Shown one piece after another: positions 6,678 through 61,974 of a stretch of 64,000 nucleotides of DNA (the stretch's first letter is position 1; every line of letters begins with the position of its first letter). The translations under genes were made by a program, and so were the position numbers. This stretch comes from Macrostomum lignano (taxonomy: Eukaryota). The DNA lies in NCBI GenBank assembly GCA_002269645.1, contig NIVC01001253.1:186001-250000 (forward strand), in the 5' to 3' direction. The notes beneath the pieces are model-generated. The model was not told the origin of the DNA. It saw only the letters and a program-made list of their open reading frames with translations, and did not search any database.

Positions 6678-7094
<417 letters not shown>

Positions 7095-17757: not shown

Positions 17758-19542
17758 CTACTTTCCTGAATCGTCTGTCCCATTGGTTGAGGGCAGCGCT
17801 ACTCGCTGGCAATACCTTGACACCAGCGGTATCCAGCTGCCGTCCCCGCCTCCGCTGCCGCCCGCTGCGCCACCCCCGCCGCCTCCTCCTCCGACGCTAC
17901 CGCCGGCCCCGCCGCCAGCGCTGGCACCGCCGCCTCCCGCGCCGGATTTGCCTCCAGCCGCTGTGCCGTCCGCCTTCAGTACGATGTCGTGAATAATGCA
18001 GTGGTAGCCTTGCGGGCACGAGCATTTGAAGGTCACGGATACGGGACCGCCAGACGTTGACTGGCGCTTCTCAGCGCAAACTGTCGGACGTCCGGTTGAA
18101 GTTGGCGACCCTGCAACTGCCGGCTGTCGGTCTGGTGTGGCTGCGGCTGTTCCAGCAGTCGAGGTCGCGGGCAGGGCTGGAGCTGATGGCAGTAGGGAAT
18201 CTGGAACTCGGCACTGCTCGATGGGGCAAACGAATTCGTAAACCCACTGGTTGTTCTGCAGACTCCAGGAGCGAAGCTGGTACAGCGGCACCTTGGATAC
18301 AGAGATGGTTAATGTCCAAGGAATAAAAATTGTTTCAATGGCAACCGGACAGCTGTAGAAATGCGTCATCAGCTACACAATTTATTCCCCTTGGCAACCG
18401 GACAGCTGCAGAAATGCATCAGCAACATACCTTTTTATTCCCCATGGCAACCGGACAGCTGCAGGAAGGCTTCATCATCTAACACACCTTATTCCCCATG
18501 GCAACCGGACAGCTGCAGGAATGCTTCATCATCTACCACACCTTATTCCCCATGGCAACCCGACAGCTGCAGGAATGCTTCATCATCTACCACACCTTAT
18601 TCCCCATGGCAACCGGACAGCTGCAGAAATGCTTCATCATCTAACACACCTTATTCCCCATGGCAACCGGACAGCTACAGAAATGCATCATCAGCTACAC
18701 ACCTTATTCCCCATGGCAACCGGACAGCTGCAGGAATGCTTCATCATCTAACACACCTTATTCCCCATGGCAACCCGACAGCTGCAGGAATGATTCATCA
18801 GCTACACACCTTCTTATTCCCCATGGCAACCGGACAGCTGCAGGAATGCTTCATCATCTACCACACCTTATTCCCCATGGCAACCGGACAGCTGCAGAAA
18901 TGCATCATCAGCTACACACCTTATTCCCCATGGCAACCGGACAGCTGTAGAAATGCATCATCAGCTACACACCTTATTCCCCATGACAACTGGACAGATG
19001 CAGAAATGCGTCAGCAGCTACACACCTTATTCCCCATGGCAACCGGACAGCTGCAGAAATGCATCATCAGCTACACACCTTATTCCCATGGCAACCGGAC
19101 AGCTGCAGAAATGCATTATCATCTAACACACCTTATTCCCCATGGCAACCGGACAGCTGCAGGAGTGTCTCCTTAACTGGGGTCTCCAGGCATCGTGCGG
19201 ACTGTCAAAGATGGCCGCCACCTCTCCAGAGTTGCAGCGTCGATCGGGTTTTTGCAGCTCGCCGCACGCCAGGAACTGCACCAGCAGGTCCGGGTGCTCA
19301 AAGTGCAGCCAAACGAAACTGTTATCAGCCGTCAGGGACACGTGCTCGCCGCTGCAGTGCTGGCAGCCTCTGCAGTACTGTCCCTGGTCTACCACTTTGT
19401 CGTGAAAGTGTAGTATAGCGTTGCACACCAGTCCAGGCTTGACTTCCTCATCAACGAAGCACTTGGGAGGCACCAGTGTCTGACTAGCAGCCATCGACAG
19501 TACAATGGTTAGGACGGTGGTGGCACATTCTATTGCGGACAT
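17758..19542 (-). CDS. Secreted cysteine-rich protein, Argos/giant-lens-like, 2 coding exons, 314 aa
   Basis: Exons 19542-19132 and 18291-17758 (phase 0, AAG|gtgtgt ... ccaag|GTG). Hydrophobic N-terminus MSAIECATTVLTIVLSMAASQ. Cys blocks HSCSCP, YEFVCPIEQC, CSCPQGYHC and SRYC resemble Argos VHCRCP, YLFACSPL..C, CQCPKGHRC and SGYC. The gene model is well supported; the family call is moderate. Confidence 0.6.
18337..19162. repeat. ~54-bp minisatellite made of the exon end and donor site of the Argos-like gene
   Basis: About 15 copies of CCTTATTCCCCATGGCAACCGGACAGCTGCAG(G/A)AATGC...ACACA. Confidence 0.96.
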
Positions 19543-20109
19543 TGCTCTGTGCATATACAACAGTCAGATATTTCGTGTGTATGCGGACGACTGGCTAGTT
19601 CGGTTGTTAATTTATCTTTCGATCGAGCTTCTCTCGTCTGCCCACCCCCCCCCCACGCCACGGCACGGCCCCATTCGTCAGGGGTTGGGCCAGCACAGAA
19701 GCCAGAATGAGTAATGAGGTCGGCATGCAGCCATTCGATGCGGAACCTGCGTCCATGAGTGAGAAATGCGAGCTTGGAGCGAGTGAGTGTGTGCTCGAAA
19801 GTGGATGGGCCAGTAGCGGAAGTGGACGGGATGAGAAATATTGCGGAACGTTGAGACGGTCGAGAAAATCCCAAACCGCACGAGGGGCGAATTCATAAGC
19901 GGTACGAGCTGGAAAGAAGTTAATTCTGGAGATCTGGGATTTATTTATTTATTATTATGCAAAGAAATTGCTGCAAAAATCCGTGCACTAAAATTTTCTT
20001 TTAATGCTTTCTGCATTATTTATTTCTTACATTATTTACTCACCACTATTTCCCTCTACACTTCCCTCTGTCTATTGTTGTCCTCATCATGTATGTCTCC
20101 CATCTTATG

Positions 20110-21860
20110 TCGCCTCCCTCTACCCCTCCCTCTACCCCCCTCTGTCCTCTCCCTATATCCCCTCTATCCCTCCCTCTATCCCTCCCTCTATCCCTCCCTC
20201 TACCCCCTCTGTCCTCTCCCTCTATCCCCTCTGTCCCTCCCTCTATCCCTCCCTCTATCCCTCCCTTTATCCCCTCTGTCCTCTCCCTCTATCCCTCCCT
20301 CTATCCCTCCCTCTATCCCCTCTGTCCTCTCCCTCTATCCCCTCTGTCCCTCCCTCTATCCCTCCCTCTATCCCTCCCTCTATCCCTCCCTCTATCCCTC
20401 CCTCTAAACCTCCCTCTATCCCTCCCTCTATCCCTCCCTCTAAACCTCCCTCTATCCCTCCCTCTATCCCTCCCTCTATCCCTCCCTCTAAACCTCCCTC
20501 TATCCCTCCCTCTATCCCTCCCTCTATCCCTCCCTCTACCCCCCTCTGTCCTCTCCCTATATCCCCTCTATCCCTCCCTCTATCCCTCCCTCTACCCCCC
20601 TCTGTCCTCTCCCTCTATCCCCTCTATCCCTCCCTCTATCCCTCCCTCTAAACCTCCCTCTATCCCTCCCTCTATCCCTCCCTCTAAACCTCCCTCTATC
20701 CCTCCCTCTATCCCTCCCTCTATCCCTCCCTCTACCCCCCTCTGTCCTCTCCCTATATCCCCTCTATCCCCCCTCTATCCCTCCCTCTATCCCTCCCTCT
20801 AAACCTCCCTCTATCCCTCCCTCTATCCCTCCCTCTAAACCTCCCTCTATCCCTCCCTCTATCCCTCCCTCTACCCCCCTCTGTCCTCTCCCTATATCCC
20901 CTCTATCCCTCCCTCTATCCCTCCCTCTATCCCTCCCTCTACCCCCCTCTGTCCTCTCCCTATATCCCCTCTATCCCTCCCTCTATCCCTCCCTCTATCC
21001 CTCCCTCTACCCCCTCTGTCCTCTCCCTCTATCCCCTCTGTCCCTCCCTCTATCCCTCCCTCTATCCCTCCCTCTATCCCCTCTGTCCTCTCCCTCTATC
21101 CCCTCTGTCCCTCCCTCTATCCCTCCCTCTATCCCTCCCTCTATCCCTCCCTCTATCCCTCCCTCTACCCCCCTCTGTCCTCTCCCTCTATCCCCTCTAT
21201 CCCCCCTCTATCCCTCCCTCTATCCCTCCCTCTACCCCCCTCTGTCCTCTCCCTCTATCCCCTCTATCCCTCCCTCTATCCCTCCCTCTATCCCTCTCTC
21301 TACCCCCCTCTGTCCTCTCCCTATATCCCCTCTATCCCTCCCTCTATCCCTCCCTCTACCCCTCTGTCCTCTCCCTCTATCCCCTCTGTCCCTCCCTCTA
21401 TCCCTCCCTCTATCCCTCCCTCTATCCCTCCCTCTATCCCTCCCTCTACCCCCCTCTGTCCTCTCCCTCTATCCCCTCTATCCCTCCCTCTATCCCTCCC
21501 TCTATCCCTCCCTCTAAACCTCCCTCTATCCCTCCCTCTATCCCCTCTGTCCTCTCCCTCTATCCCCTCTATCCCTCCCTCTGTCCCTCCCTCTATCCCT
21601 CCCTCTATCCCTCCCTCTATCCCCTCTGTCCTCTCCCTCTATCCCCTCTATCCCTCCCTCTATCCCCTCTGTCCTCTCCCTCTATCCCCTCTATCCCTCT
21701 CTCTATCCCTCCCTCTATCCCTCCCTCTATCCCTCCCTCTAAACCTCCTTCTATCCCTCTCTCTATCCCTCCCTCTATCCCTCCCTCTATCCCTCCCTCT
21801 AAACCTCCTTCTATCCCTCTCTCTATCCCTCCCTCTATTCCTCCCTCTATCTCTCCCTCT
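20110..21860. repeat. Polypyrimidine 12-bp-based repeat (CCCTCTATCCCT)n
   Basis: Directly visible. Confidence 0.97.
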
Positions 21861-22789
21861 GTCCTCTCCCGATATCCAAGCTTCCATCCTCTCTATATCT
21901 CTCCCCTGTCCCCTCCGTCCCATCTCTCCCTTCCCCCCCTCACATCCCTCTGTCCCTGCCTTCCCTTCCCATATCACCCCATTTCCTTCACTCCAGTTAA
22001 CCAGGTATAAAAATTAGTAGAACAGAATGTCTTCTCTACCAATGCGAGTATACGTACTAGGGATCCACAAGCGTAGATTGCTCTGACTAATTGATTAATT
22101 ACTAGCAATAATAGATAACTAAAGAAGATAAATGAGTTTTACATAAAGCCATTCCAGTCGAATCTCTTTGATTTACACACTTGAGCTGCCTCAATCATAG
22201 GAAGACGGCTAATACTTTAATAGACAGTACTATAGAGTCTTGGATAAAAAAGGCCATACCTACTCAAGAGTGTAATGGAAGCATCCCGATCCCAAGCCCC
22301 CGTTGCTCTGGCTGCGGTCCCCCGAGAGATGGTTTTCTTATCTCAGCGGAACTGCGCCAGCGTCAGGGATTTCAGGGTCTCTCCGTCTCCTTACCTCTCT
22401 CCCCATCCCCCCGGGTTAGGGAACAGCCTAGCCTAGCCCAGCCATTTCGGCTGATGATGCTGCTGATGATGATGATGGAGAGAGCCAGGGAGACGGGAGT
22501 AATGGGGCAGCCGCCAGGGGAACTGCTGGTCTCGAGTTAACCGGGTTGGGAGGCGCCTAAAGAGGGAAGTGACTAAAGCGAAGCCACGGCCTGAGCGAGA
22601 GTCGAAATTCACTTTTTCTCTCGATCGCGTTCTCTCTCGCATTTGCCTGCCTTCTATTCCGGTCGCAGTTGCAATATATGTGGTGACCTCTGTTAGTGCG
22701 CTGCTCTGCTAAAGCTTTTTGATAAATCTTTCAAACATAAACTTGCCAACTAATACATACATTTACTTACTCGTGAAGTAACTAATGAC

Positions 22790-23232
22790 CTCACAATTGA
22801 ACTCATCTATAAACTCACTCATGAACTCACTCATGAACTCACTCATGAACTCACTCATGAACTCACTCATGAACTCACTCATGAACTCACTCATGAACTC
22901 ACTCATGAACTCACTCATGAATTCACTCATGAACTCACTCATGAACTCACTCATGAACTCACTCATGAACTCATTCATGAACTCACTCATGAACTCACTC
23001 ATGAACTCACTCATGAACTCAGTCATGAACTCACTCATGAACTCACTTATGAACTCAGTCATAAACTCTGAGTTCATAACTCATGAACTCACTTATGAAC
23101 TCACTCATGAACTCAGTCATAAACTCTGTGTTCATCACTCATGAACTCACTTATGAACTCAGTCATAAACTCTGAGTTCATAACTCATGAACTCACTTAT
23201 GAACTCACTCATGAACTCAGTCATAAACTCTG
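22790..23232. repeat. 12-bp minisatellite ATGAACTCACTC
   Basis: Directly visible. Confidence 0.97.
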
Positions 23233-23239
23233 AGATAGT

Positions 23240-23640
<401 letters not shown>

Positions 23641-24249
23641 ATTTATCAACTATCAATCTTTTTTATCAACCTCTTATAGGAGGAAAAACAGAATACGCAA
23701 GTATACTATTAAATTTTATTATGCATTTGTTGCTTGAAAAGACCCAGCCGTATTTATGCTGGTTTCTTAGATTTTGCTGCATTTTTTCAACACGAGGAAC
23801 AGCAGCGGTTTTTGTTTCTGGGCAGAGGGGAATTCCCCTGCGAATTTCCAGCTTCAAACACAGCTGCTGTTGTCATGACAGTGTCATGAATAATTTATAG
23901 GCTCCGTTTCTTTTTATTTTTCCGTGTCGTGACGACGCTGCAAGCTCGTGGAAATTCTTGGGTTCGTGATCGGCGCCCTGAGGGAGAGGGAATGATTCTG
24001 CTAGAGAATTCGTTTTTTAAATTGATTATTTTGTTTTATTTAGTATGGATACTTCACGCTTTTCCAGTGGTTGGCATGCTTATATTGTGGCGCCACTTTT
24101 GTATTATTTGTGGCGCCTTCTTTGCGTGGATTTGGCGCCATCTTTGCATCGATGTAAGCGCCATTTTTTTATGATCGTGATGCCATTCTAAATGAATTGT
24201 GATGCCATTTTAAGGGATTAGGTGCCCTTTTTATAGGATTGAGTCGCTT

Positions 24250-24900: not shown

Positions 24901-25448
24901 GCTATTTTTCATTAATTGTGGCGCCATCTTTGCATGGGTTGTGGCGCCTTTTTACACGGATTATGGCGCTATTATTGAATGGATTCTGGCGCCATCTTCT
25001 CACACTGATTGCAGCACCATCGTTACAGTCATTTTTCACAACTCTCATTTGCATGCATTCATTATCTCGAACATCCTAAGTAAATATTTGAAAGAAACAT
25101 TATATATACATATGCTCATGCTCAGGCTTCATCTGAAAATCTCTCCTTTCACAGATCAATGATACTCAGATACAGCAGCTATTGGTCTGTAAAAGTGCAA
25201 ATCCAGTGCTTCAGTGAGACGAGATAGATATTTTTGTGTTCAATACCGCAAATAATATAGAAGTTATAGGGTCCGATGGTCGATTTTACTGACTTGGGGG
25301 CTGAATAGCAGAAAAAAATTGTAGCTTTTGGGGTTTGGCTGCAATTATCTGCGTGCTGGTTGTGACCGCTGGACACGACAGGCCACAGAAAGTGATTAGG
25401 AGCGCGTGGGGTTTTAAATGCAGAAATTTATTGCAGTGGGCTGTGGAT

Positions 25449-25710
25449 AGAGAGTGAGGGAGACAGGGTAGAGTGAGGGAGACAGGGTAGAGTGAGGGAG
25501 ACAGGGTAGAGTGAGGGAGACAGGGTAGAGTGAGGGAGACAGGGTAGAGTGAGGGAGACAGGGTAGAGTGAGGGAGACAGGGTAGAGTGAGGGAGACAGG
25601 GTAGAGTGAGGGAGACAGGGTAGAGTGAGGGAGACAGGGTAGAGTGAGGGAGACAGGGTAGAGTGAGGGAGACACACAAACACACGGACACTGAGACAGA
25701 CAGACAAACC

Positions 25711-25761
<51 letters not shown>

Positions 25762-25762
25762 C

Positions 25763-25798
<36 letters not shown>

Positions 25799-25811
25799 CA
25801 CAGACAGACAC

Positions 25812-25861
<50 letters not shown>

Positions 25862-25862
25862 C

Positions 25863-25930
<68 letters not shown>

Positions 25931-25931
25931 C

Positions 25932-25962
<31 letters not shown>

Positions 25963-26015
25963 CACACACAGACAGACAGACACTAAGACGGAAGACACTA
26001 AGACGGAAGACACTA

Positions 26016-26056
<41 letters not shown>

Positions 26057-26147
26057 CACACACAGACAGACAGACAGACACTAAGACAGACAGACACTAA
26101 GACAGACAGACACTAAGACGGACAGACACTAAGACGGACAGACAGAA

Positions 26148-27412: not shown

Positions 27413-34262
<6,850 letters not shown>

Positions 34263-37161
34263 TCAATGCCCAGCAGGTCGGCCACCCATCAAAACTGTGT
34301 AAGAGAATTAAGTTTCTTTCTATCCAAACAAACAAACAAAAAATTGCTCACTTTGACTCGCATACTTTATCCTCCGAGACAGTTATAATATTTTTTAATT
34401 AAATCATCTTCAGTAGTTTTCGCATCCAACTATTACTATACTAATTTACTACTGAAAAGTCGTGAGTAGAAATGTTCGAATATTATAGGCTTATTCAAAT
34501 ATTTTTATACTTGATATAGTACCTAAGCTTAGCAGACTTATATTTTTGTTAGTGTTTTTAGAAACCAGCATCATTACTGCATGCATCCCAGCTCAATTTG
34601 TCAATAGAATAAAAGTATATTATTTTTTCATGTAGCATCCAAAATGCGATTCTTGACTTCTTGTAGTTGCTTTTCTAGCAAATTCTCTCATTCGTAAAAT
34701 TTAGTACATATTTGCTTCTTTGCCTACTTTTCAGCTGAGTTCATAAGTAGTATATGTATTTAAAAAACCATTACTTTTTGTCTAGCTTTTTCTGGGAAAA
34801 ATCCGCTTCGCTTATTTGGTAGAACCAAAAGCTGACCATAGCTATAATTGTCTTGATCATAACAAATAAAATAGTTTTTTTTTAATTTTAATAACTCCAC
34901 TTATATATATTTTTTAATTCAATGCTCTTATAACTATAATTTACTGTTTTAACAAAGTTATAATATTAGTAAAAGTTAGTAAATGTCAGAAAAATTTTCG
35001 TTTTTGAATTTTTAAAACGTGTCCCATGGGCTCGAAAACTTTGATTGCACGTACCTCTTTAAATAACTTATAAGTATTTTAAATTTAACAGTTCACTTGC
35101 TTGTTCCATCTAAAATGTTCGGCTAGCCAAGTCATTCACAAGTGTTCAATGAGTGTATTGAGGTTAAATTTTATTAAGTTTATAATAGCTCGTAAATGTA
35201 CCGTAATAAGCTCATTTTTAAAATAAAAAAGTGCCTGGAGCAGTTTTAATACTTTTTATAAGCATTGAGAAAATTTTGGTTCTGATTCTGTTTTTTTGCT
35301 TACCTAGTTATCATTTTGTTTTAATTTAGCTAGTTACGACCGAACTATCTGCTAATGGAGCAGCTGATAGTGAGGTCCGGGATACAATTTTGGGTGACAA
35401 ATTTCGATAAAGAATTGCTCTAAAATGTTACATGCTTGCATTGGTCCATATAATTTTGAAAGGCCTTAAAAAGCGTTGAAAAAAATTGAATTTTACGATA
35501 AAATAACAAAAACGAAAATTCAAAACCACTTTTTTATCTCAAAAAATGTCTTAAAACTCTAAAACGGCCCTTTTCAGAGACAATATATGTAACCCGCAAA
35601 ATTAGCTTCTTGTGTATGCAGCAAACAATCTGATTACCTATGAATGATTAAAATCAGATGAAACTTTTTAGGATGATATTTGGATTTTTTGAATGCTGTT
35701 ATTCTGTTTATCGGGCCATGGTGGTATATTGAATTTGGTAGCGGTTCGGTAGCGGTTGCTGGGGACCGGTAAGTTTTGTACTCAGAAAACACTTCACCAT
35801 CAAGTATGCTATTTTTAGAGTGAAAATATATGCGCTCTCACAGCTGCATGCTGCATATGCCATGCAAAAGCAGAAGTTTTATAGTTTTTGTTTAAATACT
35901 ATACATGTAATACAAGTAATAATTCGCTTGCTAATGGTCTGCAAATTATACATGCTCACCCATTATTTGAGAAGCAATAGTTGCCTTCATATTTATTTAA
36001 TGAACCAAAAAGGCCCATTCTCTAAAGAATTTGAGATAGCTAACGTTAAAATAAATAATTTTATTTCAAAGTTTAATAACATACGAGCTGTTTAATAACA
36101 TCGTAGTAAGAAAGACAAGCAGGACGTACAGAATGGTGTTGATGAGGGAGAAGTGCTATGGAAGAGAGGGCTAGAATGATGCAGCTACCGAAAAGAGGGG
36201 AGGAAATTCAATGAGAAATTGGAATTTAGGAAACAAATTACAATACAACGCTGCAATTAAAATTAATTATAAGCGGAACGTAAGAATAGAAAAGTTAAAA
36301 AAGTCCAAAAAACACGCACATTTACATTTACGCGCGTACATTTAACAGGCCATAAATAACAGTGTCAAAATATTTTTGCGAGTGCAGAAACACTAAAAGG
36401 TTAATAATTTTTAGTCAGATAACAACATTTCTGCGATGTACGAAGTTCTCCACTATCTGTCTTCTCTTTTGGTCCACTTACAGTAGTACGAGTACAGTAG
36501 TACTACAGTAGTATTATTGTACTATTATTTAGTATTATTGTACTTATTGTATTATTATACTGTAGTATTACAGTAGTACTGCGAAACTCCTCTGCGTTAT
36601 ATCTAGATCTATTCAAGTGCAGGAATGTGCATATGGAAACAATAATCTACCGTTAATAAATTAAACCTGCATACAACTGGTGCTTCAGTCGCGAACAATA
36701 TCAAAACTATATTAAAAATTTTCCGGAATTGACGTTGTCGTTATTCTGTGTACGAGCGTCAGCGGAACCTGTGTAATTCTACATGGTTCATGCATTGCCC
36801 TCAGCGCAACCCATCGCTGCATATTATTGAGAGTATGGCTTAAGTATTTCAATCAAACAAACTTTTTTATCGAAATTTACCAACTAATTAATATAACCTC
36901 CTGATACCCTCAGTTTGAAACACACACCGTCAGCTCAAACTTGAAAACTCTAGAATATTGAACACCTCTGAACTTAAACAAACATGGAGCTGTCTTGTAA
37001 ATTAAATTGGTAAACAGTACAGGTGTGCAGCTGGTTGTTGAAGATATCGATATAACAAATCGCTTGTTAAAAATTGAAACTATAAAGATCTATACACATG
37101 CACAGATATGTCTTTCTAATTTTTCAGTCGACGCATCGTCATAAATTCAATATCGCTTCCA

Positions 37162-40100
37162 ATGCTGTCTTGGCGGTTTTTGCAGCACCTGCTATTGCTG
37201 ACTGTTGCATATCAGTCTGGTGCTGTATCAGTGTCGAGTGGATTGTCGGATGGTGAGCACTTTCAAAATTATAAAACTAAAGAAGGAAGCTAATTGGTGA
37301 AGGCTAGATAAAATGAGGGTGGCAGGAGCTGGGCCGTGGGGGGGGGGCAGGGCAATCAGGCCACGGGCCCGCCTGTGGCCCCCCCCCCCCCAATTTCAGT
37401 TTTTTCACTTTGGATTTTCCAAAAAAATAGTTTGAAAAACCCTTTTTTTCTTTTTTACAATTTTTATTTTAGAAGCAATAGTTTTTATACAAGCACTTGT
37501 AAGCTGTTGAAACCTGCGGATCTTGAACCCGTGGAATTCCAATCCCCGGAATTATTTTCGCACGCATTCTAAAATTTGAAGTCATACTCAAACAAAAACT
37601 TAAAAAAATTGTTAATAGTTAGGATGGAGATGAACATAAAATGGAGTAAATTCGTGTAAAATTAAGATTTGAGGCAAGCATTGATCTCGTTGGCTGGGGT
37701 GCTGTGCAGAATATCAGGCAATGTCGATCTAAAACACGTATTGGAAAAGTCAAGAAAACTCTGACCCCTGCCTCTGTCTCTCTCTACATGTACATCCCTC
37801 GGATCCTTTGAAACTTCTATCTTCGCTTCTGTTTCCTCTCTTCTCTCTCATCTTCCGTCTCTCCTGTCATCTCTTCTTTCCTCTTTCCTCTCTTCTCTCT
37901 CCCCTCTTCTTTTGTCTCTTCCCCACCTCTCTTCTCTCACGTCTTTTCTCTCATCCCTACTTTCTCTTCTTTTATCTCTGCTCTCTTATCTCTTCACATT
38001 TCTCTTTTTTCTTGCCTTTCTCTTCTCTCATCTCATCTCTTCCCGGTTCTTTCCTCTCTCCTCTCTCCTCACTCTTTTCTCTGCTCTCCTCTCTCCTCTC
38101 TCCTCTCTACTCTCGTCTCTTCCCTTTCCTCTCTTTTCTCTCCACTCTCCTCTCTCTTCTCTTTCATCTCTTATCTCTCATTTCTCATTTCTCCTGTCAT
38201 CTCTACCACCTTATCTCTTTTCTCTTAACTTTACTCTCTCGTCTCTCATTTTTATTCTTTTATCTCTGCTTGCTCTCTTATCTCTTCTCATTTCTCTCTG
38301 CTCTCTACTCTCTCCTCTCTCCCCTCTTCTCACTCCTCACTCTCCCCTCTCAAAACTTCCCTCCCCTTCTTTCTCTCCTCGCTTCTTTCTACTTCTCTGC
38401 TTTCATTTCTCATCTCTCCTATCATCTCTATTCTCTCTCCTCTCTTGTCTCGATCTTCTCTCCTATCTATCTTCTCTCTCCCTCATCTCTAATCTGTACT
38501 ATCCTTTTAACATCTCTCCTCTCTTCTCTCTGCTTGCTTATCTCCACCCTATAATCTCTCCTTTCTCCACTTTCATCATCTCTCTACTCTCTCCTATCTA
38601 CTCTCTCCTCTCTCATCTCTACTCTCTTCTATCTCCTCTCTACTTCATCCTATCTACTCTCTCCTCTCTCATCTCATCTCTCTCATCTCTCCCTCTTTTC
38701 ACCTCTACTCTCTCCTCCCATTTCTCCCTCCCTACTCTCTCCCCTTCTTCTCTGCCCTCTCCTCTCACTTCTCCTCTCCTCTCGCAGTAAAAAGATACAC
38801 TCTGCAGAGATTAGCCAATAATTAAATGAACCAACAGAGTTTTTTGATGAGAATCTGCCAGAAAAAGTAAATTATTAAGTTAAATGAATTTGTGTTTAGC
38901 TCTCTATTCAAAAATGTTCCAATGCAAATCCTAAAAAGTGTTCTTGGGCAAAAAACATTTAGAATGTTAGTTACATCAACTTAGCTATTGCATTCGTTCT
39001 TTGCGAGCTCTTTTTTGGATGTGATTTTCACTTTTCGGTACAAATTAGCTTTTACAATAATTAAAAAACTCAATTCAAAATGTTGGCATTGCCCCTTCAG
39101 TTTTTACTGAGCCCTAACTGGGCCCCCTATTCTGAAACCTCTGGACGCGCCCCCGCCTGTCAGAAACTAGGAGTTCAATAAATACGAGTAGTTTAAACTG
39201 GCAGAAACTAGTTTTAAATTTGAGACTATATATATATATATAGATATAAATATTTTTGTTTCTATCTGAAATCAAATAGGAAAAGACAGTTTCACCACAT
39301 TGACTGACTGACTGACCAGTCAGAACCTGATTATTGACTTGCAGGGCTCAGCGATGGCGCGAATTCGTTGGCGCGGACGAGGCGAGCCGCCTGCAGCGAG
39401 GGCGACTGCAAGAATGGCGGGACTTGCTGGCCGGGTCCTGTGTCGGAAAGCACCCCTCCGTGTCTGTGTGCTGATGCGTACACTGGTACTTATTGCACTA
39501 ACAGAATAGACGTCTGTGCTTCAACTCCCTGCCAAAACGGAGGCACCTGCAGCAACACAGACGCGAGCCCCTGGTATCGCTGCAGCTGCGTCCCCGGCTA
39601 CACAGGTGGGTGACCGAGTGTGCAAAGCCAGTTGAAGTTCAAGCGCGCCTTAAAATTACTAGCCAAATTAAATCAAAGTCTATTTGAAAATCGAAAAGAT
39701 AAAAAAATAAATACATTTAAAGTTACTGTTCTGTTCGGTGAAATTTTCAGCTAAATACACAGCCAAATAAGATTTAAGCCAAACTTTTAACTTGCTGCAA
39801 ATATCCAATGGAGGGAGGCGGGGCAGCTAAATCCCCCCACCCATCCGCCCGTTAAAAATACGGCGCCCCATAACAACTCTGGTTAAACACTGATTGAAAC
39901 ACTGAATGAAAAACACATTGAAGCAATCTCTTTAAATGGCAAAAGCTCAACTTTTGCCACATCTTGGAATTGGCATCCACGAGCCTTAAGATTTCATGTA
40001 GGGCGCCCCACCTCAGAGACAGGGATGTCCACCTCAGCGACATGGGCGGCCACCTCAGAGACAGGGATGTCCACCTCAGCGACATGGGCGGCCACCTCAG

Positions 40101-42071
40101 AGACAGGGATGTCCACCTCAGAGACAGGTATGTTCACCTCAGAGACAGGGCACCCACCTCAGAGACAGGGCACCCACCTCAGAGACAGGGCACCCACCTC
40201 AGAGACAGGTATGTCCACCTCAGAGACAGGTATGTCCACCTCAGAGACAGGTATGTCCACCTCAGAGACAGGTATGTCCACCTCAGAGACAGGGCACCCA
40301 CCTCAGAGACAGGGCACCCACCTCAGAGACAGGGCATCCACCTCAGAGACGGGCACCCACCTCAGAGACAGGGCACCCACCTCAGAGACAGGTATGTCCA
40401 CCTCAGAGACAGGGGCGTCCACCTCAGAGACAGGGATGTCCACCTCAGAGACAGGGGCACCCACCTCAGAGACAGGGGCACCCACCTCAGAGACAGGTAT
40501 GTCCACCTCAGAGACAGGGCACCCACCTCAGAGACAGGGCACCCACCTCAGAGACAGGGCACCCACCTCAGAGACAGGGCACCCACCTCAGAGACAGGGG
40601 CACCCACCTCAGAGACAGGGGCGGCGGCCACCTCAGAGTCGGGGCGCCACCCCGCTATCAATACGTTTTGATTGCACTTTCCGTTCATTGCACAAGCGTT
40701 CGAAAAAATCTGTTCCTTGCAAGGATCTGATGGTGCTCGCTCTGCATACATTAAAAAAATTCGAATTTCGACTTCAGATTGTACTCAAATTAAATTGAGT
40801 ATTGGCGCCCCTTCGGGTAGCACCCCACCCAGATATAATACTTGCATACTCCACAGCAACAACCAAATTTTATCTCAAAGCATCGACGAAATACGAGTAT
40901 TACAGTCTTATGCCGGGGTTGTAGCCTTGTGGTTAGAGCGTCGGACTCACGACTTGAAGGTCGGGGGTTCGATTTTCGATCCCACTTAAAAATTTTGTGT
41001 CCCTGAGCAAGACACTTAACTCTGCATTGCTTCAGTTCACCCAGCTGTAAAATGGGTGCCAGCATTAGCTGGGGTAATTGAAGGTTTGTGTGGCGACCCC
41101 CCAGTCCTTGGACTGAACAGCCGTACGCAGCCTTCAGATGCGCCGCGCAATAGCTGCGACTGAGCTGTCGGTTCCACATCTGGCCCAATCGGGGCAGGTT
41201 TAATCAGTTATGATTATAATTGCTCTTCCAAAATTCAGTCTTCAAAGCACAGCTATCAAGTCATGAGGTGGAACTTCTTTCACATCCCACCGTACCGAAG
41301 GCATGCGCCGTCTTCCTTTTTTCCGCATCAAGGAGTCCATGGGGGCCAGCGCTTCAGAGTGATGAATGACTTTAGTGCTGGCATCGAAGGGGCTCGTATG
41401 GCATTGCAGAAGTGCGCGGGGGCTGAAGGTGCATACTTTGAGTGGAAAGATTCTTTTAACCAAACTTTGAGCCATCTTTAATTAATTTTTGTACTCGTTG
41501 TCTTCTAGTAATCTTAGCTAAAGTAAGAAAAGGTAGCAGGCCAAAAATAAGTCTGTGAAGTGTTTTGTTTTTACTGCTTATCGTTTTAAATCTATTAGGT
41601 ATTACACAGGTATTTTTGTACAACCATCGTATACTAGCCACCTTGTCTAGGCGTAAAGAGCTTTGGTTGCGAGAAGCATTCAATACGAAGGCTGTTGTGA
41701 GTGACTTTGTTCAGGTTTTTGCTTTCTGTTCTGTTTGCATAGGGTTGAAGTCGATGAGATATTATTTGGGGTATCGCGCATTTTATTTTTTTCTGCTTGA
41801 AATTTGATCTTCAGTTACAAATTTCTGTTGAATGGCAAGGCGAACAAGTAAGATTAATTTTTTGCTTGGATATCGCAGGCACCAACTGCGCGATCAACAT
41901 TGATGACTGCGCCAGCAAGCCCTGCGCCGACGGCCTGTGCTCAGACTTGGTGAATGACTACAGCTGCAGCTGCTTCACAGGCTGGGAGGGCAGGAACTGC
42001 AACATCAACCACAACGACTGCCCAACGGGCGCCTGCCTCAATGGCGGCAGGTGCATTGATGGCAACGGCAC
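37162..42071 (+). CDS. Crumbs-like EGF-repeat gene, copy A (exons 1-3 only; apparently truncated duplicate)
   Basis: Exons 37162-37252 (signal peptide MLSWRFLQHLLLLTVAYQSG), 39345-39605 (RTRRA site + 2 EGF) and 41879-42071 (EGF, identical length to copy B exon 3). No downstream + strand exons were found. Confidence 0.75.
37810..38785. repeat. CT-rich low-complexity tract
   Basis: Directly visible. Confidence 0.93.
40008..40640. repeat. 20-22-bp minisatellite CACCTCAGAGACAGG(TATGT/GCAC)C
   Basis: Directly visible; in intron 2 of copy A. Confidence 0.96.
40913..41215 (+). mobile_element. tRNA-derived SINE with Deu/Nin-type core
   Basis: Pol III A-box-like TAGCCTTGTGG and B-box-like GGTTCGATT, followed by GTGTCCCTGAGCAAGACACTTAAC...CACCCAGCTGTAAAATGGGTGCC, matching the recalled Deu/Nin conserved domain pattern. 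AT-rich tail. Confidence 0.7.
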
Positions 42072-42809
42072 GTGAGTTCTCCTTCTTGACTTGACTCAGC
42101 TGCAGGAGCTCTGGGAGTCTGGATGCAGCGGGGAGGCGTCAACACCTATTCTGCTCACCCCTGGCGACCACGTGCAGGTAGTGCTCAGTAGTGCCAGCGT
42201 CTGCAGCGTGCCCCCCACCCCCCTAGAGAGAGTGCAGGGTGCCCTCAGGTAGCAGACGAGCTGTCCTAAATTCTTGTGCCTGAAAATGTCAAAAATGCCC
42301 GGGTTTGGCCGAGGTAAATGAGCCTGTCCTGGGTAGAGGCGGGACACTCGCAGATGAAGTGCTCCATATTCTCAAAAGCGGAGATGCAGAATGGGATTTA
42401 TTCTTGTAGGTAGCGATATATCACACAAAATTGTTGTTTTGGATATTACACTATATCATAAGACCACACACAAATTACCTGAAGAAATTATACAAATTCA
42501 CCGTTAACTTAGAGTGACAGATTTAAAAGATTTATTAACACTGATTTTTAAATTAATTAAAGGGATCGCAGAGGATGTATGCAGGCTACAATCGGTCAAA
42601 ACGAGATTAAAACGTTAGTTGCATGTACAGCTAGTTTTAAAACGAAAAATAAATAACGAAAGTTTTTTGTGCTATAGCAAGCGTTATGTTATACGGAAAA
42701 GTATTTTAACAAAGTATTGGGTTAGAAAAATGGAATGGCGGAAAAGTTAACCAGCTGAAAGTGAGAAATTCGTGCAGCACACCCACTTGGCAGCTGACGA
42801 TCCGCAGCT

Positions 42810-43277
42810 CAGCAGTGAGCAGTGAGCAGTGAGCAGTGAGCAGTGAGCAGTGAGCAGTGAGCAGTGAGCAGTGAGCAGTGAGCAGTGAGCAGTGAGCAGT
42901 GAGCAGTGAGCAGTGAGCAGTGAGCAGTGAGCAGTGAGCAGTCAGCAGTCAGCAGTCAGCAGTCAGCAGTCAGCAGTGAGCAGTCAGCAGTCAGCAGTCA
43001 GCAGTCAGCAGTCAGCAGTCAGCAGTCAGCAGTGAGCAGTCAGCAGTCAGCAGTGAGCAGTCAGCAGTCAGCAGTGAGCAGTGAGCAGTCAGCAGTCAGC
43101 AGTGAGCAGTCAGCAGTCAGCAGTCAGCAGTCAGCAGTCAGCAGTCAGCAGTCAGCAGTCAGCAGTCAGCAGTCAGCAGTCAGCAGTCAGCAGTCAGCAG
43201 TCAGCAGTCAGCAGTCAGCAGTCAGCAGTCAGCAGTCAGCAGTCAGCAGTCAGCAGTCAGCAGTCAGCAGTCAGCAG

Positions 43278-43285
<8 letters not shown>
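42810..43285. repeat. 7-bp satellite (AGCAGTG)n then (AGCAGTC)n
   Basis: Directly visible. It begins at the stop codon of copy B (TGC TGC TGA CTGCTGA...). Confidence 0.98.
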
Positions 43286-50898
<7,613 letters not shown>

Positions 50899-51049
50899 TG
50901 GAGGCGATATTAAACTTATGATGATGCGGTAACTGAAAATTCGAAAATAATGTTTAGCTATTTTCCGTAACGAACGATTCCTAGAAGCGTACACTGAATA
51001 CCCATTTAATATACAAGACAGTTCAATGTGCGAAGGTGAGGGATGAACC

Positions 51050-51225
51050 CGAAGTGGAGAGAAGAGAGGAGAGGACAGAGGAGATGCGAGAAGGATACGA
51101 GAGAGAGGAGTGAAAAGAGAGGAGAGAGGAGACTAAGGCGAGGGAGGAGAGCTGAGAAGAGACGAACCCTGAGCCGGCCCGTATGGCTATTGTGAAGTTT
51201 CAAAAGACCGGAGGGCCTTCGATGA
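51050..51225 (-). mobile_element. Partial copy of the hAT-like MITE family
   Basis: Reverse complement contains CTCCGGTCTTTTGAAACTTCACAATAGC (cf. 5472-5498) and ATACGGGCCGGCTCAG (cf. 15674) plus a CT tract. TIRs are not evident. Confidence 0.45.
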
Positions 51226-52881
51226 AAAATTTTCGATGAAAAAGATAAAACTTTCAACAATTTTATTAAACCATGAAGCAATCCATGCGTTTTGTAGAAT
51301 TACAGGTTCCACTTACACAGTACGTCAATTCCGGAATATTTTTAAAATAGTTTTGATGTCGTTCGCGGTGAAGCGCAGCTTTAACAGTATTACAGTGTTT
51401 ATTAGCAGTAATAGGTTTGGTAGGACACAGCTCGAACTCGGTAAGCAGAGCTCAAATAGAGAATTAGAATGCAGAGCACAGCATCTCAGATGCTGATGTT
51501 TCTATATTTAGTAAATAAATAGGCATGTATTTATCGTGCTGTCTGCGACAGCAGCGACACAGTTATCCAACTAATGCTCTTATCAGTTAAGAAGACAAAA
51601 ACTGGAGAACTTCGTATGCACTGAGTGTTGTTAATCCGACAGCTAATTTCTACAGTGCTATTGTTTTTGTGGTAAGCAGACTGAGTAGAAAAATAAAGCA
51701 ATGAGACGAGCTGGCTGCAATATTATGTGTCTGAGCAGGGTTGAGACTAGAATCTTAACTTTGCTTATTCAGGTGATGCAAATTGGCCTTGTATTCCAGA
51801 CCATCCCACAATCCATGCCGCAAACCTATCCCACAACCATCAGCCACTTCAAACCAACCACGAGTTTCACATAGCCTCCGCATGTCTGTTGACCAGTTCA
51901 CGCCGACATGCATGTATACACGTAGGTCACTCTACTCGTCACTAACTACTGTCAGTAATGTAAGTCTAATATAGCTTAGAATTGGATTTCAGTCTATAAG
52001 CTCTATATTATAGTTTTAAACTTAAACTTAAAGTATTTTAACAGATGAAACAAATATGTGTGGAATCTGAAGCAACTGTAAAGCTTTGACTCTTTAGTGA
52101 TTTTCAGCACAGCACATGTATTTTTCGAATAGCGACACAATTAAATTTTGTTAATGACAGCAATATCGACAGAACAAACCGTAATATTACGAGCATATAT
52201 AATGACTAATACACTTATTAGCAATAGTTTTTTATGTTGGCATAACAATATTAAAGCTAGATTGATGCAATTTTTACAGGAAATTCATGTAAACTGGACT
52301 TGCCATAAAACTCATATTTAAACAAAAATTCTGCGTTTCAAACACGATACGCAATACAGTTTCAGAATGAAACTTGCATCAACTTATATCAGCACAGCAT
52401 TTTATAACATTATATAACTTTTGGACTTTAAAAAATATTTTACAAGAACAAGTAGCAGTTTTTTAGAAGCTCGTGACACCATCGCACTCTTACTTCGAGA
52501 ATTAGAGTCTCGAAGGCTCAATTAAAGTAAAAAGCAATCAATTTGTATGCATTCATTTTCCGATGTTGCTTTGTTATAATGAAAGTGCCGCATTTAAACA
52601 AACGAATATATACATTAGAGATATTTTTCTGTTTCAGCTTCAATTTCTTGTTGAAAAATTCAGCTTTTTTAGATCGTTTAAGCAACTTGACTTTCTTCAT
52701 TTTCAAAGGTCAATTGCTTGCCCACGATCCTTCATTTTTTATGTTAGTTTAAAAATCATGTAGCGCTTCGAAGCATGTCATAATTAAGAAAGACAATTGG
52801 CATTTTAGGTTTGCTTCATCAAATAAATTGGTTCTTTAAGATGTATCTGGGTGGGAAGAAGTATCAACGTTGGAAAATCAT

Positions 52882-55800
52882 TTAAGCACCACCTTTGCCA
52901 GTCACCTCAAAAGTCTCCAACTCGCCCTCCAGTCGTATTGGCGGTCCTGCATCGGCTGGCGCAGCATCCCGCTGCAACCGACAAAGCCATCGGTCGTCGT
53001 CCTGTCGAGTGGTGCAGCCAGTCAACCGGGTGTTATTTATCACCGAAGCTCTGGCAGAGTCGAAGTCAGATGCTCCACTGTTGAATACATTGACGATTGA
53101 TGACGCCGGCTGCCAAGTGGCCAGGTATCCGTGAGGAAGTGCGTTTCTCTTAGTGGCATTGAGAATTATTCGCTGTGATAAATTGTCATCAAAACTAGTA
53201 GAAGATGAGCCCCGAGAAATTTCTCCTTGGTTGAACCCGCGCATCTGCGCTGCCAGGGCTTCGACTAGGACGGAACCGCCTGTGGAGAATGACGTCAGCG
53301 GTGACGTCAGTTTAGAAGTCGCGGCTTGTATGGACCGCAATGCCGGCTCGGCCAGCAGGTGAGGCAGGTCCAAGTTGAAGGCGCGCAACCAGAAGTCCGG
53401 CCGACCGACAGTGTTCGGACTGTAGACATCGTCCTCCGAGCCCTGCCACGGATCGAATGTGTAGAGGTCTAGCAGTTGGGGACTCGCGCTGGCCGGCTGC
53501 TGAGCCCTCGCCAGGCGCTGGAAGAGGTCGGAATAGTCCGGAGCCGCCCACAGGCCGGACACGGGATCGTAGACTCGAACCGGCAGCCGAGAGTCCGAGC
53601 GACTTGGCAGCCAGACCAGCTCCATGTCCGCGTCGTGCAGTCCGCCCAGATACCCAAACGGAAATCGGAACGGTAGTCGGTTAATCGATGGATTCAACAA
53701 CCGGCCCGAGTTGCTGTAGTCCTGTCGAAGCACACTGTCGCCTGTGGAGTTGAACACCGCCAATGGAGAGCCCAGTCGATCGCAGGCCACGTAGAATCGC
53801 TGGCTGCTACCTGCACTATTGGACAGGAGATCCACTGCCACGAGACGACCAGCTCGATCTTCGTAGGTGAAAGCCAACAACTGTTTCTTTCGAGGATAAT
53901 AGACGTGCGTTATCCGGTTTGGCTGAAGCGGATCTGCGTAAAGCAGCTGGAAATCACGGGTCGGCGTCAGCATGTCTTGACGTGCAACTAAGCGTTGTCG
54001 ACCGTCGTAGAGGTAGCGAATTCTGTAGCAGTCGCTAGCCCCGTTAATGCACTGCGCTGTCAACAGCTTTCCAGATGCGTCAAACTTGAAGCTCTCCTGA
54101 GCTCCTAGCGACTTAAGATCGCGGCGACGAGCGAGAAATCCGTCAGAGTCAAACATGTACTCAGCCTTGCCCACAGAAGTTGGCAGGCCCCGGGAGTCGT
54201 ACGAGTAAGAGTAGGTTCGATTTTGGCTGACGCGGCTAGCAAACCGACCGTTCGATTTGTATTCGAACTCCTCCCGGTCGACCGAGGCGCCTGGGACTTT
54301 GCGATCTACTCGGATCACTCGAGAGCGCAGATCACGGACGTACATGACGTTAGTGAACACATTGTCATCGTCCTTGCCGATGCGATGGGCCAATTCCTGC
54401 ACCCTGCCTACTGAATAGGCGTGAACCGACAGGACAAACACCCTTGCCGAAGCTACGTGAAGCATCGTATCCACTAGTCTGCCCAGGCTGTCGAAGCTGA
54501 TCTTCAGCGTGCTGATAGAATCGCTCAGCTCGATAAAGTGCTCACTCCGAGTGACGGTGTACGCGCGAGGTCCACTGCCCCAGAGTTTTGTCACGTAGCC
54601 TCGAGTCAGGTGACGAGTAGTGTTCAACACTGCAGTATGGCCACCGATGCTGGTCGACATCGAAGCAGTGAACAGCTGGTCCCCGTGATAAACAGGCCGA
54701 TGTATTACCGAAGCTAAGCCGCAAGCGGCATCAAACTCGACGGTCTCCTGAACTGGCAGCAACTGACTAGCGTAGGAAAGCTTCTGAGTCACACTGCAGG
54801 CTGGTGAAGAATGCTTGGTAGTCACGACAGCCAACTGTTTACTCGCCAGGTCGTAGGCAAACCTGATGCCAGTGTCCGATCGTTCGCCATCGTAGGAATT
54901 TTGCTCGGAAATTCGGCCGTCTTGCCGATACGACAGCACTAGTCGACGCTGTCTGCTGGGGTACAGCACCGACTCGAGTGCTTCGTCTGCGTTGTAATGG
55001 AAGACTGCAGCTCTGGCTGTGCCAAGCCAGGGCCAGTAGAGCAGTCGGTTTGAGCTCAGCGAAGAATGAGCTCGCAGCCTGATAGTACCAGTCGGGGTGA
55101 CAAGCCTGCCCAGACCGCCTGTTGACGGGTCGCGCTCGAATCGATAGGTCTGACCGGCTGGATCCGAGATGCGACCGGGCTGTGGGTTTTTGATTAGAAA
55201 TGGATCTTTTGGTTTCATATTTTTTCCTATTTGAATTACTAAACATATTTGTGAGCCATGCACACCAAATCAATCTCTTCTCTATGCACAACGGAAGCTG
55301 AGAAACAGAGCGGTAGCTTATCTAATTGTCGCATAAATGACCCCTGGTTCGAATTCGCGAGCGGCTACAATATCTTCTTATCGTCTTATTGAAATTTAAT
55401 GTCGTTATTGATTTTAATACACTCTTGATGGTCGCATATCACTCATGTGAATCACACAAGTCACTCTTGATGATCATAAGTTACCTTTGTTGATCCCACG
55501 TCATTATCGAAAGATACACGACGTTTGATTCGAATAGCTCTTATTAGAAACAACCTCAACCAAAGCTTTAACTATAAGAGACGCTACCTTCAATCAATGC
55601 ACTATTTACCATACATGTAGAAGAGTTGTCCGAGTAACCGAACCGATGCACTGCCAAGTCTTCCGAGCTGGTCGCGGACCCAGACGAGAAGTTCCGGGCC
55701 TCGGACACGAGTCTCCCAGCGCTGTCGTACTGTCGCTGGAGCCAGCCCTCTCGAGCGGTGCTCTCTGAGGCTGTGCGAGGCTTGTCGGCCCAGCGCATCT

Positions 55801-60165: not shown

Positions 60166-60841
60166 CAGAAACCAAATTTCTTCAGGTATAAATGATATAT
60201 TTTATTCAAAAGCTCAGGTGCTCAGACTTGAGTATCCCCTAATTATATTTGACAAGCAATTGGAGTAGAGTGTCCCATGTATCCTAGCAATCCAATCAAT
60301 CAATGGATAATCAAACAGTTGAAGCAGTTTTCTGAGAAATCTCTCTCCTCACATTTTCCCATCAATAGATTTCAAACAAGACTCTTCATTTCCAGTTGAT
60401 TGACAGTTCTTTATAAAATTACTGCCATTAGGTTTAATCACATTTTAAAGGAAAAAATTGGTTGTGCATATGACTCACAGGTAATTTGGCAAGAAGAGTG
60501 TAAATGTTGACAGCTCTATTTGAGCTGCAAAAATGCTGCTCTGCTACTGAAAGCAGACAGGATAGGAGTGATAGGAGTGGGGGACAATAGGCATTCAGTT
60601 CCTCTTCTTTATGGTACGCGGCGCTTGTGCACGCCCTGCAGTGCCATCCCCCTACGCGCCAGGGGGAAATGACGCTTTTTTATGTCGGTGCTAACTTTGT
60701 CACCTGTCAATTTACAATGAGCATGCGGGTGCGCTGCGGATGGGAGGCGGGCAGGTGGAACTCCCACACCCAGCTTCTGAGAGCCCTGTGTCAAGATATG
60801 TCACGGCGGTAGGCATTTAGAAACTGGGACAGGCGCAATAT

Positions 60842-60951
60842 AGACAGACAGACAGAAAGACCTACAGACAGACAGACAGACAGAAAGACCTACAGACAGA
60901 CAGACAGACAGACAGAAAGACCTACAGACAGACAGACAGACAGAAAGACCT

Positions 60952-61028
<77 letters not shown>

Positions 61029-61041
61029 TACTAAGACAAAC

Positions 61042-61137
<96 letters not shown>

Positions 61138-61138
61138 T
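60842..61138. repeat. (GACA)n microsatellite
   Basis: Directly visible. Confidence 0.98.
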
Positions 61139-61974
61139 AGTCCAGTTTGATCAGCAGGATCAGTTTCAAGTGAAACGTCAATCAGAATGCCTGGGTAAGC
61201 AGGGGCTTCGCTCCGAGGTGTTAGCAGCGGTAAGAGTCGCGCGCAGTTCCTGTTTTACTCCCAGACAAGGCTTCTCACGCCATCGATTTTCCAGGAATCT
61301 CCACTCCGGGCTTCTTTCGAGATTTTCTAGCCGTATAGGTTTTTACTAAAAGTTTGAAAAAAACCTTTTTCTACACTTTTCAACAACAGGAAGACGCGAG
61401 GTCAGCTGGTGTAGTTTTTTTGTTAGTCGCAACATCCCGAGATCGCGTACCTCCAGTGAAAGCAGCTCCTGTACCTAGAAATTCTCACAATCAAAACAAT
61501 GAGGATTTTGCTTTTTTCACAGAGGAAAAAATCTACAAAAAGCACTCACGCCAGTCTTTGTTAATTCAGCTTGAACCCCTGACGGCGGGGCGGCATTTGG
61601 GATTTTCATTCAGACCATTGGGACGCGACTCAACAAGGTCCTAATCCTGCACAGTGAAAGCGCTGTATGACTAATGTGCTCAACTGTGAAGTGTTTGACA
61701 AACGATCCGGAGCTGTGTGCTCTGCTTAACACCCGGGGCCCAAGTGAAGGGTGCTGTCGTGCGCAAGTGTCAGTTTGCCTTCCCGTGAAGTGGGCGTTTG
61801 AACTGCTAATGTGACCTGCCTGAGGCCAGCTCAAGCGAACTGGGAAAGTAACTGAGCATCATGGACCACTTTTTTATTTGACGATAAATAATATATGTAC
61901 TAGTAAGCATGATAATATTACATTCTATTTGTTGCCAAGAGGATTGCCAAGATGTGTGTGAGTGAGTATCATCT

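Follow-up and report, generated by a model that had tools for sequence, protein, structure and literature searches.

Two related gene copies converge on opposite strands of a 64,000-nt stretch of the Macrostomum lignano genome (assembly GCA_002269645.1, contig NIVC01001253.1, positions 186,001–250,000; hereafter the window), each beginning with exons that encode epidermal growth factor (EGF) repeats. Copy A, on the plus strand, ends after its third exon, and copy B, on the minus strand, is full-length and carries a TAG codon in exon 2. A preliminary description of this DNA observed that A exons 1–3 followed by the later exons of B would form an uninterrupted frame, and proposed opposite-strand trans-splicing, a recent inversion, a partial inverted duplication or an assembly fault as possible origins. 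Do A and B together make a protein that neither makes alone, or do their defects have nothing to do with each other? We find that A is a gene fragment, not a gene. The locus is very probably the product of a partial inverted duplication and of an independent nonsense change in B, and it represents ordinary gene-family turnover in a Macrostomum-type flatworm genome.

Fragment A and its junctions

The locus was compared with two paralogous loci of the Mlig_3_7 assembly, NIVC01000038.1:172875–196742 (L001) and NIVC01000114.1:828484–853543 (L002). On this basis the plus-strand copy and the DNA adjoining it are laid out as follows in window coordinates (UTR, untranslated region).

35773–36104, minus strand: B-type intergenic DNA resuming to the left of the insert in B's orientation, collinear with L001 15729–16000
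Between 36104 and 36381: left junction of the insert
36381–37161, plus strand: upstream, promoter-proximal part of A, homologous to the B upstream region and to L001 copy 2 upstream 17332–17798
37162–37252, plus strand: A exon 1, 91 nt, ATG and presumed signal peptide, donor GTGAGC (base-level alignment, splice-site inspection)
39345–39605, plus strand: A exon 2, 261 nt, phase 1-1, EGF1 and EGF2, open (alignment, splice-site inspection)
41879–42071, plus strand: A exon 3, 193 nt, phase 1 to 2, EGF3 and the first half of EGF4 ('NINHNDCPTG' type)
42072–42424, plus strand: remnant of A intron 3; family homology stops at about 42424 (alignment to L002/L001 introns)
42425–42469, no strand: right junction, about 45 nt of filler homologous to neither side (alignments of both flanks)
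42470–43277, minus strand: 3′ UTR and flank of B, homologous to L001 13353–14622, downstream of the paralog stop codon

A therefore comprises about 0.8 kb of upstream DNA and exons 1–3, and breaks off 353 nt into intron 3. The upstream DNA matches that of B at 36385–36465/51669–51590, 36648–36798/51410–51278 and 37113–37257/50946–50803 (in the plus-strand orientation of A). All three exons are stop-free and have GT–AG borders, and introns of 2092 and 2273 nt are retained between them, which rules out a processed pseudogene (retrocopy). The intron 3 remnant aligns up to about 42424 with the intron that follows the A-type exon 3 in L002 (14256–14714 and others) and in L001 (2396–2791). The exon that comes next in cis in the paralogs (FTCDCTDTGF.GDRCQSN...; P0003, P0009, L001 and L002), which lies about 600–700 nt past the A-type exon 3, is missing from the window. 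A tblastn search of the 64 kb with the family proteins P0001–P0003 detects family exons at 39341–42147 and 43284–50368 and none elsewhere on either strand. No plus-strand family exon lies beyond 42147 in the window, leaving the last intron of A without a cis acceptor. The preliminary description was thus right that A is stop-free and has no exon 4 onwards.

Could A nevertheless be a small gene of its own, making a 182-residue secreted EGF protein by read-through of intron 3, or an antisense modulator of B? This would agree with its open frame and intact splice sites, with a start that resembles a signal peptide and with the conserved block upstream, and a read-through transcript would overlap the 3′ UTR of B. 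However, if intron 3 is left unspliced, the donor GTGAG brings in an in-frame TGA at once (ACG TGA), and the protein would break off halfway through an EGF domain, leaving three cysteines unpaired. The ratio of nonsynonymous to synonymous changes (dN/dS) of A, about 0.65–0.86, is moreover no lower than the family background described below. We regard an independent role for A as very unlikely.

The flanks of A show how it came to lie here. Both are collinear, in B's orientation, with an uninterrupted paralogous site in L001. On the right, the 3′ flank of B aligns with L001 13353–14622 down to 42470 (minus strand). On the left, 36104–35773 matches L001 15729–16000, which is intergenic and downstream of a B-like gene (E = 5e-15 and 3e-7); a reversed-subject control for this left-flank match gave none. 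About 1.1 kb of L001-type sequence is missing or diverged at the insertion site. These alignments indicate that A is a 6.0–6.3 kb 5′ fragment inserted, in inverted orientation, about 810 nt behind the stop codon of B. Because the flanks on both sides keep B's orientation, they point to insertion rather than inversion.

The same flanks bear on the possibility that the 5′ part of the next tandem copy was simply flipped in place, in which case its exons 4–12 should lie beyond the promoter of A. The Mlig_3_7 arrays are head-to-tail with the next copy 3–8 kb downstream, so that an in-place flip would be a short step. However, the left flank (36104–35773) matches B-type downstream DNA in B's orientation and is not inverted, and the 36 kb to the left of A contain no family exon on either strand. 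A simple inversion is therefore highly improbable, and the recent inversion proposed earlier does not fit a locus in which the DNA past the upstream end of A keeps B's orientation and the rest of the split gene is nowhere in the window. By contrast, the partial inverted duplication that had been listed beside it is borne out: a 5′ fragment lies in the 3′ intergenic DNA of B with both junctions in unique sequence.

The position of these junctions also matters for the reading that the arrangement is an assembly artefact, in which a chimeric read, or the mis-joining of paralogous or haplotypic contigs, attached A to the 3′ flank of B, and the TAG of B may be a consensus error. The genome is difficult to assemble, being very rich in repeats and duplicated in part, the family has many near-identical paralogs and the window itself contains a scaffold gap (967 N at 12568–13534). 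Against this, both junctions lie outside satellite arrays, and an inverted insert with collinear flanks would require two independent mis-joins. A filler of about 45 nt is typical of genuine non-homologous rearrangements. The arms have diverged (exons 82–98% identical, introns unrelated), which rules out a palindromic read artefact of the missed-adapter kind. We consider an assembly artefact unlikely.

A transposon-captured fragment (of the Pack-MULE or Helitron-like type) was ruled out by the lack of terminal inverted repeats: no inverted repeat pairing 36.1–36.4 kb with 42.4–42.5 kb was found, and no transposon ends flank A. Rfam and tRNA scans of the whole window returned no matches, so no spliced leader (SL) RNA or short interspersed element explains the junction. 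Minisatellite and microsatellite arrays are very dense throughout the window (for example at 6650–7150, 20000–22000, 23200–23900, 25300–26100, 32500–34300, 37800–38800 and 60800–61250), in keeping with the 15% of simple or tandem repeats reported for the M. lignano genome; the introns of neighbouring paralogs carry different arrays.

Gene B and its nonsense codon

We modelled the exons of B beyond exon 3 using the transcript-based paralog protein P0002 as a guide. The resulting gene reads leftwards through the window.

50899–52335, minus strand: B upstream region, conserved with L001 copy 2 upstream (L001 16193–17759 aligned to window 52335–51277)
50808–50898, minus strand: B exon 1, 91 nt (alignment, splice-site inspection)
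50092–50373, minus strand: B exon 2, 282 nt, phase 1-1, carrying the nonsense codon
50327–50329, minus strand: in-frame TAG, codon 46 of B
48933–49125, minus strand: B exon 3, 193 nt, hybrid, first 126 nt A-type (98%) and last 67 nt of 'SVDTDYCLSG' type
47405–47844, minus strand: B exon 4, 440 nt, EGF repeats, acceptor 47844
46062–47332, minus strand: B exon 5, 1271 nt, EGF repeats and laminin-G-like region
45418–45986, minus strand: B exon 6, 569 nt, laminin-G domain
45093–45331, minus strand: B exon 7, 239 nt, EGF
44258–44367, minus strand: B exon 8, 110 nt, transmembrane helix
44146–44178, minus strand: B exon 9, 33 nt, GKLSLGYFERQ, matching P0002 residues 466–476
43958–44071, minus strand: B exon 10, 114 nt, matching P0002 residues 477–514
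43518–43607, minus strand: B exon 11, 90 nt
43278–43427, minus strand: B exon 12, 150 nt, ending in TGA (stop codon end 43278)

The model has 12 exons and 1193 codons, with the TAG as its single premature stop, and GT–AG sites throughout exons 1–3. Ten exons had been counted previously, missing the two phase-0 cytoplasmic exons at 44178–44146 and 44071–43958 that P0002 supports; the TAG in exon 2 had been correctly recognized and lies at 50329–50327. The donor of exon 3 is about 1.1 kb from exon 4. Intron 4 measures 72 nt in the window, and the corresponding paralog intron contains about 4.8 kb of extra DNA (L001 4328–9196).

Pfam identifies EGF (in six stretches), hEGF and Laminin_G_2 domains in the B product, followed by the hydrophobic helix LAIAAIAVAIFIFGVLLSVSVFLLLL and a cytoplasmic tail of about 150 residues that ends ...NQPEECC. 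Its relatives of solved structure are Delta-like 1, Notch and neurexin, and its database relatives carry the names 'Delta-like', 'EGF-like domain-containing' and 'eyes shut'. The earlier label 'Crumbs-like' holds for the architecture: a signal peptide, EGF repeats, laminin-G domain or domains and one transmembrane helix are common to B and to Crumbs, Eyes shut, Delta/Notch-type and neurexin-type proteins. It does not hold for the tail. Crumbs has a short cytoplasmic tail (about 37 aa) with a FERM-binding motif and a C-terminal ERLI. The longer tail of B ends in EECC, with no ERLI PDZ-binding end and no recognisable FERM-binding motif of the Crumbs type.

In an alignment of four copies of exon 2, the codon that is TAG in B is GCC in A and L001 copy 2 and TAC in L001 copy 1; B is thus one base away from the sense codon of a paralog. 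The TAG directly precedes the first cysteine of EGF1. Skipping exon 2, which is 282 nt long and in phase 1-1, would keep the frame, the start codon and the hydrophobic N terminus, and leaves 1099 open codons. Two alternative acceptors just past the TAG (CCTAG/TG and TGCAG/CG) were checked by hand as a means of rescue and ruled out, both being out of phase with exon 1.

Apart from the TAG, is exon 2 of B decaying? All cysteines are conserved across seven copies of the exon. The EGF2 loop between the first two cysteines (39500–39530 in A; 50170–50215 in B) contains from 0 to 9 extra residues among these copies, and since its length varies in this way the insertion that B has there is not in itself a defect. 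B alone changes the otherwise invariant PC(Q/K)NGGTC to RCQNGYC. Of the positions at which the other copies do not vary, four are changed in A and three each in B, L001 copy 1 and L002 copy iv, so the copies are similar in this respect.

Two repeat arrays accompany the gene. About 68 units of a heptamer, (CAGTGAG/CAGTCAG)n, form an array (42807–43284) that starts at the B stop codon and makes up most of the presumed 3′ UTR; the same array follows the paralog stop codon in L001. A 22-nt minisatellite of about 25 units (44637–45186, minus strand) begins within the end of exon 7, and is kept in the Mlig_3_7 paralog (L001 11415–12338). Each of its units holds a consensus-like 5′ splice site (CCA/GTAAGTAGTG), so that intron 7 opens with a ladder of potential donors spaced at 22 nt, which is not a multiple of 3.

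Divergence of A and B within their family

How closely related are A and B? A blastn self-comparison of 35–53 kb yields four inverted homology blocks: an upstream block (36682–36735 with 51374–51322), the exon 1 region (37113–37264 with 50946–50796, E = 4e-47), exon 2 (39301–39615 with 50417–50082, E = 2e-85) and exon 3 (41875–42000 with 49129–49004, E = 3e-58). Beyond these, the only matches in that interval are between low-complexity DNA. The inverted arrangement and the equal lengths of the two first exons (91 nt) and the two third exons (193 nt) agree with the preliminary description, on the evidence of alignment and splice sites. The near-identity that it ascribed to exons 1–3 is not found. 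Identity between A and B is 92.3% in exon 1 and 82% in exon 2, which has indels of 21 and 3 nt (261 versus 282 nt). In exon 3 it reaches 98% over the first 126 nt; the last 67 nt cannot be aligned as DNA, since they code for different EGF half-repeats (NINHNDCPTG... in A versus SVDTDYCLSG... in B).

Introns 1–3 of A and B are unrelated, save for the last 44 nt of intron 1 (39301–39344; 50417–50374), a tract with a (GACT)n tail and the polypyrimidine/acceptor region that is 95% identical between the copies. The rest of intron 1 differs both in sequence and in length (2092 nt in A versus 434 nt in B). The 44-nt tract may be a conserved splicing element or mark the boundary of a gene-conversion tract. 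Because their introns are unrelated (intron 2 of A is L002-like; introns 2 and 3 of B are like those of L001 copy 2), A and B are neither fresh copies of each other nor the arms of a fresh palindrome.

Each part of A and B has a different nearest relative in the family. In exon 1, A and B are nearest to each other. Exon 2 of A is nearest L001 copy 1 (91%), its intron 2 is nearest the L002 copies (about 80%), and its exon 3 is 98.4–98.5% identical to L002 copies iii and iv. Introns 2 and 3 of B are nearest L001 copy 2 (90% and 95%, respectively). These mosaic identities, which are suggestive of gene conversion, are the pattern of an old family that has been homogenised piecemeal rather than of a fresh inverted duplication of B.

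L001 and L002 together contain at least six family copies, arranged head-to-tail in a single orientation, with variable exon content and mosaic similarity. They are 94–96% identical to B at the DNA level across exons, introns and 3′ UTR, and the translation of B exon 5 is 89–92% identical to M. lignano proteins; the protein searches found no database protein derived from this locus. Repeats make up more than half of the Mlig_3_7 assembly, and non-repetitive duplicates at ≥95% identity account for 180 Mb of it (PMC5730564). The locus probably belongs among the numerous duplicated blocks of this genome. The family comprises fast-evolving, multi-copy, single-pass membrane proteins with EGF repeats and laminin-G domains, and is a flatworm-specific expansion.

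In the usual gene of this family the A-type exon 3 is followed in cis by a second exon that starts FTCDCTDTGF(T/A)GDRCQSN and continues with B-type sequence, an arrangement present in P0003, P0009, L001 copy 1 and L002 copies iii and iv. In B exon 3 (48933–49125), two exons that follow each other as distinct units in most paralogs (L001 2270–2466 and 3032–3264) are fused in frame. The fusion, which removes two EGF half-repeats, is also found in L002 copy ii (L002 7251–7443). An extra A-type exon is present in L002 copy iii, and the number of EGF exons differs among copies. The locus thus illustrates the rapid reshuffling of this EGF/laminin-G family in Macrostomum, through tandem arrays, exon fusion and duplication, a hypervariable EGF loop and partial copies.

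Estimates of selection do not set A or B apart. For the pair A and B, dN/dS is 0.86 when exons 1 and 2 are taken together with the first 126 nt of exon 3; exon 2 by itself gives 0.65. The value for B and L001 copy 1 is 0.60 over 593 codons, and all pairs of exon 2 fall between 0.4 and 1.0, which we take as the family background. The family as a whole is weakly constrained or diversifying; the variation of the EGF2 loop together with a pN/pS of 0.4–1.0 could reflect diversifying evolution of a multi-copy surface-protein family.

From the anatomy, junctions, family context and frame arithmetic of the locus we infer an insertion mechanism, an order of events and a fate for the transcripts. A would have been copied from a family member and inserted inverted into the 3′ intergenic DNA of B, probably in a non-homologous or replication-template-switch event that left the filler at one junction. 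In a separate event, one base of B exon 2 would have changed and turned TAC into the nonsense codon TAG. B would now be either a recent null copy, whose mRNA is a target for nonsense-mediated decay, or the source of a 1099-residue protein through skipping of exon 2. The defects of the two copies would then be unrelated, and the joining of their RNAs neither needed nor indicated.

This account agrees with truncated inverted duplicates and pseudogene fragments known from tandem families, which likewise consist of a promoter and first exons only, with homology ending inside an intron, filler at the junction and collinear flanks; their families, like the present one, vary in exon number and have a mosaic similarity that suggests gene conversion. 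Nothing essential differs here. The only unusual feature is that the nonsense codon of the full-length neighbour falls within the duplicated part. The chance that one random nonsense change in B would fall in the part shared with A is about 16% (566 of 3582 coding nt). The coincidence of the 'complementary defects' of the preliminary description is therefore not beyond chance.

Several observations nonetheless weigh against a duplication followed by an unrelated nonsense change. The open frame, consensus splice sites, full set of cysteines and conserved promoter-proximal block of A give it the look of a 5′ module still in use, although with roughly 20 substitutions on its lineage it is not unlikely that A escaped a stop by chance. 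The donor copy of A was not found. The left junction is bracketed only to 277 nt, the left-flank matches are at 68–76% identity, and the TAG is a base call of the assembled consensus.

The significance of the locus lies mainly in its annotation. A should be labelled a gene fragment, and B a member of the family whose premature stop lies in an exon that can be skipped; the two should not be merged, and neither should be named Crumbs.

The proposed trans-splicing and the rest of the window

Would splicing of A exons 1–3 (plus strand) in trans to B exon 4 (minus strand) bypass the TAG? The conceptual chimera of A exons 1–3 and B exons 4–12 is open over 1186 codons and would yield a full-length protein, and the acceptor at 47844 is where it had been placed before. 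The phase match that the preliminary description cited follows from the homology of the two third exons, both of which are 193 nt long, and it is therefore not independent evidence. A does retain an intact donor with no cis acceptor downstream and a promoter-proximal block in common with B, and the trans-splicing of genic transcripts across strands is established elsewhere (PMC11414722, PMC4387717).

Two such systems provide the closest comparisons. The C. elegans gene eri-6/7 has been split by an inversion, and direct repeats of about 930 bp pair the two pre-mRNAs (PMC11414722, with the work of Fischer and Ruvkun cited there). The resemblance is that the 5′ exons and the 3′ exons of a homologous frame are close together on opposite strands, and that the chimeric frame is open. 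However, eri-7 has no 5′ exons of its own, whereas B has its own upstream block and exons 1–3, making A an extra copy. There are also no long direct repeats between A and B, and no same-strand repeat that would make their pre-mRNAs complementary: the best plus/plus match of the A pre-mRNA and its read-through to the B transcription unit is 36 nt long at 78% identity (E = 0.016).

At mod(mdg4) and lola in Drosophila, an intronic pseudo-5′ splice site that pairs with U1 over 9–12 bp is required (PMC4387717). Here, too, the last intron of the 5′ transcript has no cis acceptor and the candidate 3′ exons are on the opposite strand. Unlike mod(mdg4), which has many alternative 3′ cassettes with their own promoters, this locus offers a single 3′ partner, B, which already possesses 5′ exons. 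The A intron remnant and the read-through contain no pseudo-5′ splice site complementary to U1 over at least 9 bp; the longest contiguous pairing is 6 bp in 42072–42424 and 3 bp in 42425–43300, although the 9-bp rule comes from Drosophila and may not hold in flatworms.

The organisation of B and of the family argues in the same direction. B's own promoter, exons 1–3 and cis donor, only some 1.1 kb from exon 4, would outcompete a donor supplied in trans. The defect of B consists of one changed base in an exon that can be skipped; so recent and mild a change would not demand a rescue system. Many paralogs exist, so that the loss of one copy calls for no rescue. The paralogs cis-splice the A-type exon 3 to a different exon from B exon 4. 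SL trans-splicing, which occurs in 38.8% of M. lignano genes (PMC5730564), employs SL RNA donors and is uninformative about the joining of two pre-mRNAs. Taken together, the presence of exons 1–3 in B, the lack of complementarity between the pre-mRNAs and the lack of a strong U1 pseudo-donor leave the proposed opposite-strand trans-splicing without support in the sequence, and we judge it to be extremely improbable. By analogy, A might supply a signal peptide and EGF1–3 to B exons 4–12 as an early-stage flatworm counterpart of eri-6/7, in which the 5′ exons of the 3′ partner have recently been disabled, and to this we likewise give very little credence. Were chimeric RNAs joining A exon 3 to B exon 4 to exist, they would represent a rare and evolutionarily young case of opposite-strand genic trans-splicing outside nematodes and insects.

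Other coding sequence is present on both sides of the pair. Just upstream of B, on the same strand, a 795-codon open frame (52885–55269, minus strand) matches the teneurin YD-shell (Pfam PF25023, E = 4e-27) and RHS repeats; for it a protein database search gave no relatives at E ≤ 1e-30. To the left of the pair, an open frame at 15018–15524 (plus strand) encodes a haspin-like kinase domain (PF12330, E = 4e-29), and a cytochrome P450 gene has two exons at 3217–4143 and 4624–5322 (plus strand; Pfam p450, E = 1.5e-29 and 1.2e-70).

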